From Octopus sinensis (lineage: Eukaryota): DNA of 64,000 bases. The stretch covers positions 61,318,001-61,382,000 of the forward strand of contig NC_043002.1 of NCBI RefSeq assembly GCF_006345805.1. The letters run 5' to 3'. The stretch's first letter is position 1. The number at the start of each line of letters is the position of its first letter. Below, one piece after another: positions 10,828 through 63,661 of the stretch. Position numbers and translations under genes: made by a program. The notes beneath the pieces were generated by a model. That model saw only the letters and a program-made list of their open reading frames with translations. It was not told where the DNA came from and did not search any database.

Positions 10828-11631
10828 TCACTTCTGTCTAGAACATATTTTCTTTGTTTTGTATCTGAATTGCTTACTAATGCACACATATACAAGGAAA
10901 TTTAAACTGTTGTTTAAGCATGCGATAAAATCTGCAATTAGAAAGGATATCTGAATTGGGTTATACTCGTCTACGTTCACAATAATCGCAACAGGAACCG
11001 TTGTAGATATAAATATCACATTTATACTGATGACGAGCCGTATAGTATCCTTTGATTGCGTATTGTGTTGGTTATGTTGACCGAGATTTGGTCTATGAAT
11101 TAATTTGTATGACATAAGTATGTTGCTGATAACTAAAAGGGCTGCTGGCATAAAGGAGTATGAGATGGATAAAAATAAAACCATCAGTTTTTGCGGGACA
11201 ATTTCGCCGTATAATACTGCTGTGTTAATTACGAATATTGAAACAAATGCAATGGATCCCGCAATAATGAACCTATGGGTTGATGCGTTCAGAATTAGAA
11301 ATGGACAATAAACGGCCAACGTGCGTTCAACTGATATTATTACTGTTAACCATGAAGACATTTCGTTCGAAACTGTACTAATCAGGTTTACCAAAATGAA
11401 AACACTTTTTGAATATGTTAATCCGTAAGTTTCTAATATAATTTTCAGTGCATTCACCCATAATGTAATGATATCCACAGCCGCTAGTGAAATAAGACGA
11501 GGAGCAATTCTATAGTCCCTCATAGCTGTCGAACACGCAACTATTATTATAAGTATGTTGCCCAGAGTCCCCAGAATCATCAATGAAATGGAGCTGAAAC
11601 GAAGAGCACTATATATTCCAGTGTTATTCAT
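10828..11631 (-). CDS. Single-exon class A GPCR, paralogue 1 (267 aa from first ATG); peptide/FMRFamide-receptor-like motifs, orphan
   Basis: Seven hydrophobic segments with GTLGN (TM1), LAAVD (TM2), SSWLTVIISVERTLAVYCPF (TM3), SFMP (TM5), FISTTVP (TM6), NNSLNFLVY (TM7) and SKQFR (helix 8). The track start at 11658 is TTG; the first ATG is at 11631. Confidence 0.92.
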   Translation of the reverse strand: MNNTGIYSALRFSSISLMILGTLGNILIIIVACSTAMRDYRIAPRLISLAAVDIITLWVNALKIILETYGLTYSKSVFILVNLISTVSNEMSSWLTVIISVERTLAVYCPFLILNASTHRFIIAGSIAFVSIFVINTAVLYGEIVPQKLMVLFLSISYSFMPAALLVISNILMSYKLIHRPNLGQHNQHNTQSKDTIRLVISINVIFISTTVPVAIIVNVDEYNPIQISFLIADFIACLNNSLNFLVYVCISKQFRYKTKKICSRQK

Positions 11632-13519
11632 TATAATATATTTTCGCAATTTCTCCAAACTCCTTTATATTCGATGGTACATACAAAAAAAAATCGAACT
11701 TCAGTTGTTGCTGAAAGCAGAGTGGCTGACTGCTTACAACAATGTTATGAAAGTTGTTTGTAAGGTGTAGAAGGACAAAATATTTTTTTTTTATGTCGGA
11801 ACACTGGATATACACGGCAGAAATTCTAATTTTTAATATAATTCACACGAATGCATCTTACAAGGAAAGGAAAAAAATACGATCGGAAAAAAAAACAATA
11901 ATAAATATTTATAATTATTGCTTACCTTCCTTTAAATATCATATTTGCGTAAAAATAAAAAGAATATGAATGAAACATATTTTATAAAACGATCAAGCAT
12001 AAATAAAGGTATTCTAAAAACCTTAAACTATATTTACAGATATTCAAGGTGCTCCGTTGAAGAAGCACTGGCATGACACACACCGTTGGTAAGAAGCATT
12101 ACTGTTTTGATTCTCTTAGTAGCAGTGTGCTTCGCTTGTAATCTAACAAGTTTCAGTGTTAGTTTGTGACGCATGAGATGAATTAGGCACTAACAATTTC
12201 TTCTCAGAACCGTCCAAAATCAGGACAACCATTTATCAAAATAAATGGTAGTCTGCTTGTGAATATTCTTTATTTTCGCAGAAGGTGATATCTACTTAAG
12301 ACTGCATGAGTGAATACGTTAGTTATTTTTCAGAAGATAGGTTGTGATTTGGAGGCGATTTACGTGCAATGTCATACAAGTTAAATGAAACATTTGATGT
12401 TCAGTGGAAGATTCACAAAATGAGATCGATTTCCAGTTGTTGTCTTCATTTTATGGCTTACTTTGCACGAATTGAACTTGCACTTCGTTAACTCTGATCA
12501 AATATTGACAATATTATCTTTACTTTACATATTATATCATCTCTTGCTAATTTGATATTAAAACAAAACAAACTGGTTTTGAAGGAAATTTGACTATTAA
12601 TATTGGCAGGGCAGTAATGAAAGTCGAATTTCCATCTTTGGTCCACTGGCAATTAAATGAGAAAGCATCCGTTTGAGATATATTCTACGTTTTATTTGTA
12701 AACGCAGAAATAAAAAGGAAATAGGATTCCAATATTATTTTTGTTCACATCCTTGTAATAGATTTATATGCTATGTCCATAAGTTCATTGCTTCGAAATT
12801 CAGTAAAACATAAATAAATATATAGAATAATTGTTAGCAAAGTACTCCTTAAAATAATTTCTTTTCGCAGTCTAATTGAATGGTTTTCGTTGACATCTTT
12901 TTACAAATATTTTGTCTTTTATATCCTGGAAACGAAAATCTGCAACCTATATCAAAATGATTTATTTAATAAGAACATAAAACAAAAACAAAACAACGTT
13001 AGTTTATTGAATCTAATGCTGTAATCTTGTTTGTACGGCAATTATCTGGATATGTGGATAGACTTAATAATTTGCATTAGCCAGGCGTTAAATTAATAAA
13101 TGGCTTCCCTAACGTGTATTAGTAAATATTCATATCGTGTCACTAGTTGTTGAAGTATTAATAATTGGATCGACGGTCGAACCTACTATTTTCCCCATTC
13201 AATTATCTGCTTAAAATACGATAACTAGTTTCAGTAAAGCTAAAAGTCTACTTTAAACAATCATCTAGACGACTTTTCTATTCAGTTAATTCAATCAGCC
13301 TAATGCTTGCCAACACTTCGGTAAATAATATTACATTAATATATTAAGTTTGTAATATTATTTGAAAGAAAAAAAAGATCAATAATGATACAAACGGAAC
13401 ATGAATGTATTATTATATGGTTGATTTGTATATGAATAATAATACTGACAACAATAACAACAACAACAACAACAACAATAACAGCAATAGTAATAATGAT
13501 ATAATAATAATAACGATGT

Positions 13520-60720: not shown

Positions 60721-62737
60721 TATATATATATATATGTATATATGTATATATGTATATATAGATATATGTATATATATATATTATATATATATATATATTA
60801 TATATATATATATATGTATGTATATATGTATATATATATTATATATATGTATATATATATATGTATATATATGTATGTATATATATATATATATATATGT
60901 ATAATATATGTATGTATGTATATATATATGTATTTATATATATATATATAAAATATATATGTATATATATATATTATATATATACATATATATATACACA
61001 TGTTTATATATATATATATTATATTATATATATATATATATATAATATAATATATATATACATATATATATATATGACAAAGTAATGTTTTAAGATACCG
61101 CAGGAGTGGACATATATATAAAAGACAGTTTGTATTGCGAATTTTTTGTAAACTTTTAAAGATATCTCCTTCTGTGTTTATATACACTACCAAACAGCAT
61201 GATTTTTATTGAACTCCTAATAATTTTTGTTGAATATTTTCGTAAATACTTTCTTGTAAACAGTTTTAACATTTTGTTATTATTATCAAAGAATGTATAT
61301 AAATATTTTAATACTTTTGTGTCAACCAGTACTTAATACAATAAACCTTATACAAATCTTTACAGTTTACTTTTGACACTATTTTTCTGAAAAAAAGAAA
61401 ACGGTCAAGTGAATAAACCTTCTTATATATATATATATATATATATATAATAACAATTTAACAATAACACATATTCATACATATATGTACATACCTACAT
61501 CTATATGTATATATACATGCATATATATACATGCATATATATATATATATATATATATATATATATATATTATATATATATATGTACAGACAACCACAAA
61601 CAAACGTCTTTTTTAACAACGAAAAACTAAGTACAAGACAAACAATACAAGGAATATTCCCTTTCATCAGCTGTCCCTGGTTCGACTCAATGCGTGTTTC
61701 GAAGGTAAGGGCAGAACACGATCCGGCCGAAACAGTCCTTCCTGCAAAATGAATTTTAAAAAATTCTTTTGCAGAGGGGTAAAAAAAAGTGACGAGAACA
61801 GGACGTAAAATAATACAAATAGATAGAAATACAGTACACATAAAGAATAAAAACAGGACAAGGAAACCAACAATATATATATATATACATAGGCAAGTAT
61901 ATAATTTTTACAAATACGAATAATTCGTTGAAAGTGCCAAAATACTGAGTGGCGCACTGGCACAGTTTAGACCTGTTGTGGTCAATCGCAGTTGTGGTAC
62001 ACATGTCCGAATTTCTAATAGTTACATGGATTTGGAGATATTGTCTAGGTAAATTTTAATAACACACTTTTTCTTACCAAGCAGTCGTTTGCTCTGAAGA
62101 AAAACATCATTTGAAGTCAACATTGATTATCCAGACGTAATTTTACATTTCATTTAGGTCATCATGTACCATTGCAGTGATATCTGCCAGATATTCGATG
62201 TCATGCCTGGTTAAGTAGTCATGGCTGGTATCAATGATTTCAATTGAGTGTGGGATGTTGGAGGAGTTCACTGATGAAGATGCTCTTTATATTGGTGTAG
62301 CAGCTATATGATAATATTAATTGAGCGTCTCTTCTAAATCATATAAGTATTCTTTTCTGGGAAAATGAATAAAACTCTCTATTGTCCAATGCCTTGTAGA
62401 ACACAGAGGGGTTTTGACAAAAATTCCATACAATAGAAATAAGAATTAATAATTGTTAAATTAAACTCCAAATACGATCATGTTGATAATAAAAGTAGAA
62501 TTATGAATATGTGTCTCTATAAGTGTGTGAGACTGAAAATATTACGTATATATATATATATATATATATATCTATATATATATATATATATATATATATG
62601 TATATATATGTGTGTATGTTTGTGTATGTTTATGTGTGTATGTGTGTGTGTGACTGCGTGCTTGTTTAGAAATATTTAGATATAGTTAACAGTATTGAAA
62701 ACTTAAGAAGTAACTATAATCGAAACGTGTTTAATTA

Positions 62738-63661
62738 TTATAATTTTGTCTCAATATAATACATATTGCATCTATTGGTTCGGCTATGCTTCTTCATACA
62801 CATACGCTTCACATTTTCCCGAAACTTGTTACTCACTATGAAATACATGATAAAATTAACACAGTTATTCGTCAGGGATAGCGTCTCCAAAATTCTGTAA
62901 GTGGTATCAACATTGCAAGCCATAAATATTGTAGCCAGGATATAGATGGTAGGAGGAAACGTTGTTAACAGAAATACAATATTTATAGCAAGTACGATAT
63001 ACATTGAGTTCGTATTTCGTGTAGCACGGCTTCTATGAGAATTCTGACCGAGTTTCGGTCGACTGAATAATTTATAAATTAATATAATAGAGCTTAAAGC
63101 TAAACACGCTGCAGGTACCAAGGAATAGAAGACCATAGTGATTGCGAAAGAATAGGTGGGATTAGGTGTTACAAAAAATAGCATACATTCTGCAAAAATA
63201 TCAATGACAAGAAGAGGAAACATTACAATGCATGGGGGAACATTTCTTGTAGAAGAGAGTCGTGAAAATGGGCAATATACCGCCAACAAACGTTCAACAG
63301 AAATAATGACGGTGATCCAGGAAGAATACGTAGATAAAATATCAAGGATGATAATTAAGATGGTATTTTCAGTCAAGTTTGTAACTGTTCGCGTAAAATC
63401 CAAATTACACGATATCCAGATATTTCTTATACAAGTGGTCAAGATTAGAAAAGTATCGACAATAAGAAGGCAGAGAAGATATGGATTAATCTTACATTTC
63501 GGGATGGATTTGCTGCAAAATATTACTATCGTGGTTACATTACCGATAGTTCCAAAAATTAACAAAACTATTGATACATAACACACAGAAAGGATGGCAG
63601 AAATACTTGTTGTATTATGTTCGAGGGTACAGTTTATAAATATGCCGCTTTCTGTAACCAT
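62738..63661 (-). CDS. Single-exon class A GPCR, paralogue 4 (307 aa from first ATG)
   Basis: Gap-free alignment to GPCR3 (about 72% identity by manual count). The track start at 63916 is TTG and runs through a microsatellite; the first ATG is at 63661. Confidence 0.94.
   Translation of the reverse strand: MVTESGIFINCTLEHNTTSISAILSVCYVSIVLLIFGTIGNVTTIVIFCSKSIPKCKINPYLLCLLIVDTFLILTTCIRNIWISCNLDFTRTVTNLTENTILIIILDILSTYSSWITVIISVERLLAVYCPFSRLSSTRNVPPCIVMFPLLVIDIFAECMLFFVTPNPTYSFAITMVFYSLVPAACLALSSIILIYKLFSRPKLGQNSHRSRATRNTNSMYIVLAINIVFLLTTFPPTIYILATIFMACNVDTTYRILETLSLTNNCVNFIMYFIVSNKFRENVKRMCMKKHSRTNRCNMYYIETKL

Follow-up and report, generated by a model that had tools for sequence, protein, structure and literature searches.

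Four tandem octopus class A receptors without the TM3–ECL2 disulfide, and a candidate N-terminus–ECL3 cysteine pair in three of them

The receptor array

The 64,000-nt stretch of the Octopus sinensis genome analysed here (the window; NCBI RefSeq assembly GCF_006345805.1, contig NC_043002.1, positions 61,318,001 to 61,382,000 of the forward strand) is a tandem array of four single-exon genes for G protein-coupled receptors (GPCRs) of class A in an octopod genome, referred to as p1 to p4. All four receptors lack the disulfide between transmembrane helix 3 (TM3) and the second extracellular loop (ECL2), and p2, p3 and p4 have a pair of cysteines, one in the N-terminus and one in ECL3, that may form a disulfide of their own. 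The four open reading frames (ORFs) are intact, lie on the same strand (minus) within 53 kb and each match Pfam 7tm_1 and/or 7TM_GPCR_Srw, with coordinates counted from the first ATG as follows.

10828..11631, minus strand: p1, single-exon GPCR of 267 aa; Pfam Srw E=4e-9
25913..26815, minus strand: p2, single-exon GPCR of 300 aa; Pfam 7tm_1 E=3e-10
48001..48924, minus strand: p3, single-exon GPCR of 307 aa
62738..63661, minus strand: p4, single-exon GPCR of 307 aa

Against PF00001 (cut-off 30.5 bits) p2 scored 40.4 and p3 34.1 bits, with p4 below the cut-off at 22.8 bits and p1 unlisted, while against PF10324 (Srw, cut-off 22.2 bits) p1 scored 36.5, p3 43.7 and p4 39.4 bits with p2 unlisted. 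The closest pair is p3 and p4 (72% identical), with p2 about 42% identical to either and p1 about 31% identical to the rest, and a tblastn search of the window found no further receptor copies or fragments. The superfamily motifs N1.50, D2.50, ER, P5.50, P6.50 and NNxxNFxxY are all conserved in p1–p4, the anchors (E)R3.50 and Y7.53 included; the clade to which the four belong is referred to below as the window clade. The products are probably orphan peptide or chemosensory receptors.

Loss of the canonical disulfide and reduction of ECL2

Position 3.25, the TM3 site of the canonical bond, was located in each receptor by counting 25 residues back from the Arg (R3.50) of the (S/A)ER motif. The residues found there, and the segments that make up ECL2, are listed below.

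11398..11400, minus strand: Phe78, position 3.25 of p1 by anchor count
26537..26539, minus strand: Ser93, position 3.25 of p2 by anchor count
48628..48630, minus strand: Tyr99, position 3.25 of p3 by anchor count
63365..63367, minus strand: Asn99, position 3.25 of p4 by anchor count
11188..11208, minus strand: vestigial ECL2 of p1, GEIVPQK, Cys-free
26330..26341, minus strand: vestigial ECL2 of p2, LQNP, Cys-free; modelled loop Q160-N161
48418..48432, minus strand: vestigial ECL2 of p3, LPNGE, Cys-free; a low-confidence model gives a three-residue loop
63155..63169, minus strand: vestigial ECL2 of p4, TPNPT, Cys-free

The C3.25–ECL2 bond is absent from p1–p4 and their ECL2 is vestigial, at two to five residues. 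The original prediction had placed F, S, Y and T at 3.25 in the four paralogues; this holds for p1–p3, as does the lack of a cysteine throughout, but p4 has Asn at this position and the Thr is at 3.26, a slip of one residue. All four of the short Cys-free ECL2 strings that it had named were found, and the structure model of p2 likewise gives an ECL2 of two residues. An unseen exon encoding a longer ECL2 is excluded since the ORFs run uninterrupted from TM4 to TM5 and the distance from R3.50 to P5.50 is 58–61 residues in all 19 clade members. Lack of this bond does not exclude membership of class A, as there are genuine receptors of that class elsewhere that are without it.

Between 3.20 and 3.30 there is no cysteine in any of p1–p4 except Cys98 of p2 (3.30, 26522-26524), which is inside TM3 and buried. 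It stands in the motif TFRCLT, five residues into TM3, is shared with the p2 orthologue (P0005 among the relatives described below) and has no partner in ECL2.

The outer half of TM4 has a conserved polar face in the p3/p4 subgroup (approximately 48460-48480 in p3 and 63197-63217 in p4), which is also found in the relatives P0001, P0002 and P0004. The strings in this subgroup are VIDMSEH, VIDIFAE, ISDIFAH, VIDIAEH and CCDCIIH, with an invariant Asp followed three to four residues on by Glu and/or His. This D-x-x-E-H face is absent from p1 and p2; lying beside the vestigial ECL2, it could line the pocket or form an ion-binding site.

Relatives and the superfamily

A profile search of 1.84 billion cluster representatives (50% identity) returned 11,239 relatives, of which only 24 reached E<=1e-30. 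Of the relatives that carry a name, the nearest are proteins of Octopus bimaculoides, as are all those named at E<=1e-30, the others being Logan or ENA contigs. A further search with P0009 as the query added P0160 only. Residues were surveyed in the best 150 of the 11,239 relatives together with p1–p4, anchored on N1.50, R3.50, P5.50, P6.50 and position 7.50. Among solved structures the best sequence match of the family profile in the PDB was GPR139 (E=6e-15).

Cysteine was present at 3.25 in 125 of the 151 superfamily representatives that could be scored, and all but one of these 125 also had a cysteine in ECL2. The missing Trp of TM4, which the original prediction had also pointed out, is real in that no Trp occurs in TM4 of any of p1–p4, but it is not specific to these receptors, since of 154 sequences of the superfamily 147 are without W4.50. 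Thr occupies position 6.48 in 128 of 153 sequences and Phe position 7.50 in almost all, and the window receptors follow this pattern, with P7.50 changed to F and W6.48 to T. The missing W4.50, T6.48 and F7.50 are traits of the whole Srw/GPR139-like superfamily.

The distance from R3.50 to P5.50 has a median of 79 residues where C3.25 is present, is 63–70 residues in the immediate sister group and 58–61 in the window clade. The immediate sister group, which includes the O. bimaculoides protein XP_014770947 (P0026), keeps the canonical bond, with the loss of both canonical cysteines in one of its members (P0022), whereas the window clade, monophyletic with a bootstrap of 90, is uniformly without both. 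Since the sister groups keep the bond with a longer R3.50–P5.50 spacing, its loss in the window clade is derived and is coupled to a deletion of about 20 residues from ECL2. Other independent losses of both canonical cysteines within the superfamily are those of P0022, P0042/P0138 and P0146/P0132, and they show that disulfide partners vanish together in this superfamily. Two cysteines within ECL3 are present in P0132, which is without C3.25, an arrangement resembling the intra-loop pair of the melanocortin receptor MC4R.

A cysteine pair in the N-terminus and ECL3

Three of the four window receptors have one cysteine ahead of TM1 and one in ECL3, at the same generic positions in each.

26801..26803, minus strand: Cys5 of p2 (1.20), middle residue of an N-C-T sequon, invariant in the subclade
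26087..26089, minus strand: Cys243 of p2 (7.29), in the six-residue ECL3 RYCTFN
48892..48894, minus strand: Cys11 of p3 (1.20 in generic numbering)
48178..48180, minus strand: Cys249 of p3 (7.29 in generic numbering)
63629..63631, minus strand: Cys11 of p4 (1.20 in generic numbering)
62915..62917, minus strand: Cys249 of p4 (7.29 in generic numbering)

The N-terminal motifs FNCTL, NNCTL and INCTL (1.20) and the ECL3 motifs RYCT, RECK and MACN (7.29) were all found as originally described for p2–p4. The absence of both cysteines from p1 was borne out too, the N-terminus of p1 starting only at 1.26.

Across the 14 full-length members of the window clade the two cysteines co-occur without exception. 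Seven proteins have both (p2, p3, p4, P0001, P0004, P0005 and P0009), seven have neither (p1, P0010, P0011, P0012, P0013, P0015 and P0160) and none of the 14 has only one. The N-truncated P0002 and P0003, which group with p3/p4, have the ECL3 cysteine. Of the 32 extracellular positions compared across the seven proteins with the pair, whose mutual identity falls to about 40%, only N4, C5 and C243 (p2 numbering) are invariant. The sequon at the site of the N-terminal cysteine is retained in relatives without the cysteine, as N-S-T in P0010 and N-N-T in P0012.

Outside the clade the presence of an N-terminal cysteine (1.05–1.34) is associated with that of an ECL3 cysteine (7.20–7.35), with five sequences having both, 14 the N-terminal cysteine only, three the ECL3 cysteine only and 101 neither (Fisher p=0.002). 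With P0038, which was left out of this table on account of its short N-terminus, there are six carriers of both cysteines outside the clade, each with nearest neighbours that have no pair. Recurrence of the pair in six unrelated lineages of the superfamily is the strongest phylogenetically independent support for the putative bond. The form of the pair varies, with P0111 having CC in both the N-terminus and ECL3 and P0145 having N-C-S together with an ECL3 cysteine. The combination of an N-terminal N-C motif and an ECL3 cysteine is repeated in P0145, P0038 and P0043.

Gain and loss of the pair within the clade

Trees were built by neighbour joining (NJ) with BLOSUM distances, and bootstraps of identity-distance trees were run with capped p, Poisson and Kimura distances. 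In every tree the branch of p1, P0013 and P0015 (bootstrap 100) is sister to the remainder of the clade, and the outgroups of the clade are without the cysteine pair. The original prediction had taken the absence of both cysteines from p1 as a paired loss in support of the bond; this does not stand, as the branch of p1 is basal and the outgroups lack the pair, such that primitive absence is the most parsimonious explanation and p1 most simply never had the pair. Within the clade the trees point to between one and three events of gain or loss, disagreeing on whether the P0010 lineage falls inside or outside the pair-bearing group. Identity-distance trees favour a single gain followed by a paired loss in the P0010 lineage, which would make that lineage, and not p1, the sole candidate for a paired loss in the clade.

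The structure model of p2

An AlphaFold2 model of p2 built from an alignment of 125 sequences had a predicted local distance difference test score (pLDDT) of 88.5 and a predicted template modelling score (pTM) of 0.88, with seven TM helices and helix 8. TM4 (136-159) and TM5 (162-194) are separated in the model only by Q160 and N161. The modelled ECL3 is RYCTFN and the N-terminus has 13 residues, with the N-terminal cysteine eight residues ahead of the TM1 helix and the ECL3 cysteine three ahead of TM7; TM1 adjoins TM7. As modelled, the geometry of a C1.20–C7.29 bond in p2 is plausible. The p3 model, from an alignment of 11 sequences, was poor (pLDDT 59). A Foldseek search of the PDB with the p2 model gave 870 class A matches at E<=1e-3 with TM-scores of 0.65–0.76, and these matches were generic to class A, with no specific structural likeness to MC4R or GPR139.

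Selection, duplication and gene context

Comparison of p2 with its orthologue P0005 (74% identical) gave a ratio of non-synonymous to synonymous divergence (dN/dS) of 0.43, and p2 is under purifying selection. Between p3 and p4 the ratio was near neutral (0.89; dS 0.19). Homology between the p3 and p4 loci (47978-49070 vs 62715-63808; 85.6% at the nucleotide level) is limited to about 1.1 kb. This piece comprises the coding sequence (CDS), some 130 bp on its upstream side, where there is an (AAT)n microsatellite, and some 23 bp downstream. The pattern points to duplication of a segment the size of the gene or to a retrocopy, or else to gene conversion confined to the CDS.

The mechanically called ORF of p4 extends to 63916, adding 85 upstream codons (63662-63916) in which the (AAT)n microsatellite is read as poly-Ile; translation almost certainly begins with the ATG at 63661, as this lines up with the start of p3. 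An in-frame stop lies nine codons upstream of the p1 ORF start, and TATAAA occurs about 40 nt upstream of its ATG. The p2 orthologue is carried on L001, a 2.2-kb genomic contig from another sample and not a transcript. The motif AAACAGAAA, with ACAG 6–10 nt upstream of the p2 ATG, is conserved in both the window (26816-26830) and L001 (114-128); a splice acceptor serving a non-coding 5' exon is conceivable, as is a part in the start-site context. An extra 5' exon of p2 would leave the N-terminal cysteine in place.

The window is AT-rich (28–40% GC) and rich in microsatellites. A SINE-like (short interspersed nuclear element) repeat of about 184 bp is found in tandem and dispersed (3493-4358 and 15653-16138, with shorter copies near 9677, 19075 and 29714), and a further copy occupies L001 1-117, directly upstream of the start codon of the p2 orthologue. 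An ARAGORN scan found no intact tRNA in the window. Between the receptor genes there are the remnant of a mariner-type transposase (PF01359) and, with a zf-RVT domain, a LINE-like (long interspersed nuclear element) reverse transcriptase, at 31021-31707, 37165-38052 and 38486-39598, all on the minus strand. The ORF downstream of the reverse transcriptase opens with a poly-Lys/Arg/Glu stretch derived from a (TTC)n repeat.

Comparison with known receptors

CXCR4 has an N-terminus–ECL3 bond between C28 (1.22) and C274 (7.25), and N-terminus–ECL3 disulfides are also present in AT1, P2Y and chemokine receptors. The octopus cysteines at 1.20 and 7.29 are at nearly the same generic positions as those of CXCR4, AT1 and P2Y receptors, and in p2, p3 and p4 they fit the position ranges of such bonds (about 1.20–1.28 and 7.25–7.30). 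In these known receptors, however, the bond is additional to the canonical TM3–ECL2 bond and to a long beta-hairpin ECL2, whereas in the octopus proteins it would be the only extracellular disulfide.

The closest precedent is that of the melanocortin receptors, which were not named in the original prediction. In MC4R, ECL2 is four residues long without a cysteine and there is no C3.25, while cryo-EM has revealed a disulfide between C40 of the N-terminus and C279 (7.30) that "stabilizes the EL3-Ntt interplay" (PMC8563958). MC4R and p2–p4 are alike in their tiny Cys-free ECL2 and the lack of a C3.25–ECL2 bond, with the ECL3 cysteine at 7.30 in MC4R and at 7.29 in the octopus receptors. They differ in that MC4R contains a second bond, inside ECL3 (C271-C277), and carries D3.25 together with a Ca2+ site, whereas the octopus receptors have F, S, Y or N at 3.25 and p2–p4 a single ECL3 cysteine. 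No melanocortin receptor was found among the 60 best PDB profile matches listed and, since in addition the canonical bond is retained in the groups that are sister to the octopus clade, the resemblance is convergent and not a matter of family-level homology. A bolder reading, to which we give little credence, is that the octopus-specific clade has convergently rebuilt the whole outer architecture of a melanocortin receptor, with a two-residue ECL2, a single N-terminus–TM7 disulfide and a wide lidless pocket, the D-x-x-E-H face of the p3/p4 subgroup perhaps helping by binding an ion or cofactor; a pocket of this kind could suit chemical cues that are bulky, peptide or surface-bound (contact) in cephalopod-specific tissues.

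Class A receptors without the ECL2–TM3 bond include MC4R, S1P1R, GPR82, GPR139, GPR142 and GPR146, with C3.25 conserved in about 88% of the class (PMC7460885). GPR139, the best solved-structure sequence match, shares N-F-x-x-Y in TM7 with the octopus receptors and like GPR142 is without the bond (PMC7460885), but the similarity is only distant and in the profile alignment GPR139 keeps W6.48 and has a longer stretch from TM4 to TM5 than the octopus clade. As C3.25 is kept by most superfamily members around that clade, the losses in GPR139/GPR142 and in the octopus clade are independent of each other.

Absence of the TM3–ECL2 link has already been published for lineage-specific class A GPCRs of Lophotrochozoa, including cephalopods (PMC11886862), and cephalopod-specific class A expansions form tandem clusters (PMC6408891). 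The octopus array is like these expansions in being a tandem array of fast-evolving class A receptors. The expansions described in PMC11886862 differ in having a long ECL2 (25–30 residues, as against 2–5 in the octopus clade) and come with no mention of an N-terminus–ECL3 pair. The Aplysia candidate chemoreceptors AcCRb/c and the nematode Srw receptors are likewise rhodopsin-like and come from clustered genes without introns, with a short N-terminus, glycosylation sequons and a motif of the ER type (PMC2700072), and p1, p3 and p4 have Srw profile matches; the cysteine patterns differ, and the likeness to p1–p4 seen here is one of features.

Interpretation

We consider it fairly probable that in this clade ECL2 was cut back, the canonical bond was lost and an N-terminus–ECL3 disulfide was gained in the branch leading to p2–p4. 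The Srw/GPR139-like superfamily, marked by ER-x in place of DRY, T6.48 and N-F-x-x-Y in place of NPxxY, would have given rise to these receptors in an expansion specific to a cephalopod lineage. In the ancestor of the clade an ECL2 of about 20–25 residues was reduced to a turn of 2–5 residues with the loss of both C3.25–ECL2 partners, as comparison with the sister groups that retain the bond shows. Later, in a part of the clade including p2–p4, a cysteine would have been gained at the X of an N-terminal N-X-S/T glycosylation sequon (1.20), and in the same part of the clade a second at the junction of ECL3 and TM7 (7.29). The resulting C1.20–C7.29 disulfide, itself plausible in p2–p4, would link the top of TM7 with the short N-terminus and so brace the outer rim of a pocket that ECL2 has ceased to cover, in the manner of C40–C279 (7.30) in MC4R. 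On the basal branch of p1 the pair would never have been acquired.

Several points count against this sequence of events. The seven-to-seven co-occurrence within the clade may represent as few as one evolutionary event, shared ancestry inflating a Fisher test made within the clade. In the BLOSUM NJ tree the pair-bearing proteins form a monophyletic group with a support of 29% only, and the identity-distance trees give two to three events, with two changes in 61–78% of bootstrap replicates. The N-terminal residues of the p2 model are of moderate confidence only (pLDDT about 63), and p3 or p4 could be drifting given their dN/dS. Finally, alanine mutants of C40 and C279 in MC4R were reportedly without functional effect (PMC7460885), such that even a real octopus bond may be dispensable.

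That a single origin can account for the pair-bearing sequences is also the starting point of a different explanation, in which no bond joins the two cysteines and they co-occur by hitch-hiking on a common ancestral branch, the N-terminal cysteine tuning the sequon and the ECL3 cysteine being free or lining the pocket. In keeping with this, the N-terminal cysteine sits within a sequon that is also found at this position, as N-S-T or N-N-T, in relatives without the cysteine, and an unpaired N-terminal cysteine is common in the superfamily, as in the 14 sequences with that cysteine alone. Hitch-hiking fits less well with the invariance in the pair-bearing proteins of both cysteines, along with the adjacent Asn only, while the other extracellular residues vary, or with the lack of any singleton among the 14 full-length members and the recurrence of pairing in six other lineages; free extracellular cysteines are in general disfavoured, and we regard this explanation as rather unlikely. 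Bonds between molecules, in a homodimer or with an accessory protein, or coordination of a ligand or metal by the cysteines, have nothing direct in their favour beyond the polar D-x-x-E-H face that p3/p4-type members have in outer TM4. The same positions form intramolecular bonds in MC4R and in chemokine, AT1 and P2Y receptors, making a pair the simplest arrangement and an intermolecular or metal-binding role very improbable.

It might also be argued that some of the copies, p3 or p4 especially, are decaying duplicates whose features have no functional meaning, as would be in keeping with the near-neutral p3–p4 ratio, the confinement of their homology to about 1.1 kb and the transposons that fill the intergenic space. 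None of the four ORFs is disrupted, however, and each retains all of the superfamily motifs; purifying selection is seen between p2 and its orthologue, and young paralogues of a chemoreceptor-like kind usually have a high dN/dS, so that decay too seems improbable.

Significance

Replacement of the canonical bond by an N-terminus–ECL3 pair in this clade would overturn nothing, as about 12% of class A receptors are without C3.25, the loss in Lophotrochozoa has already been published and the MC4R precedent is well studied. What the octopus receptors would offer is a stepwise natural example of a class A GPCR dispensing with its most conserved extracellular disulfide, in which the R3.50–P5.50 distance shortens from about 79 to 63–70 and then to 58–61 residues, the canonical cysteines vanish and a putative replacement pair appears in the N-terminus and ECL3. 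As such the clade is useful when orphan receptors of cephalopods are annotated and offers a point of comparison for the folding of GPCRs.

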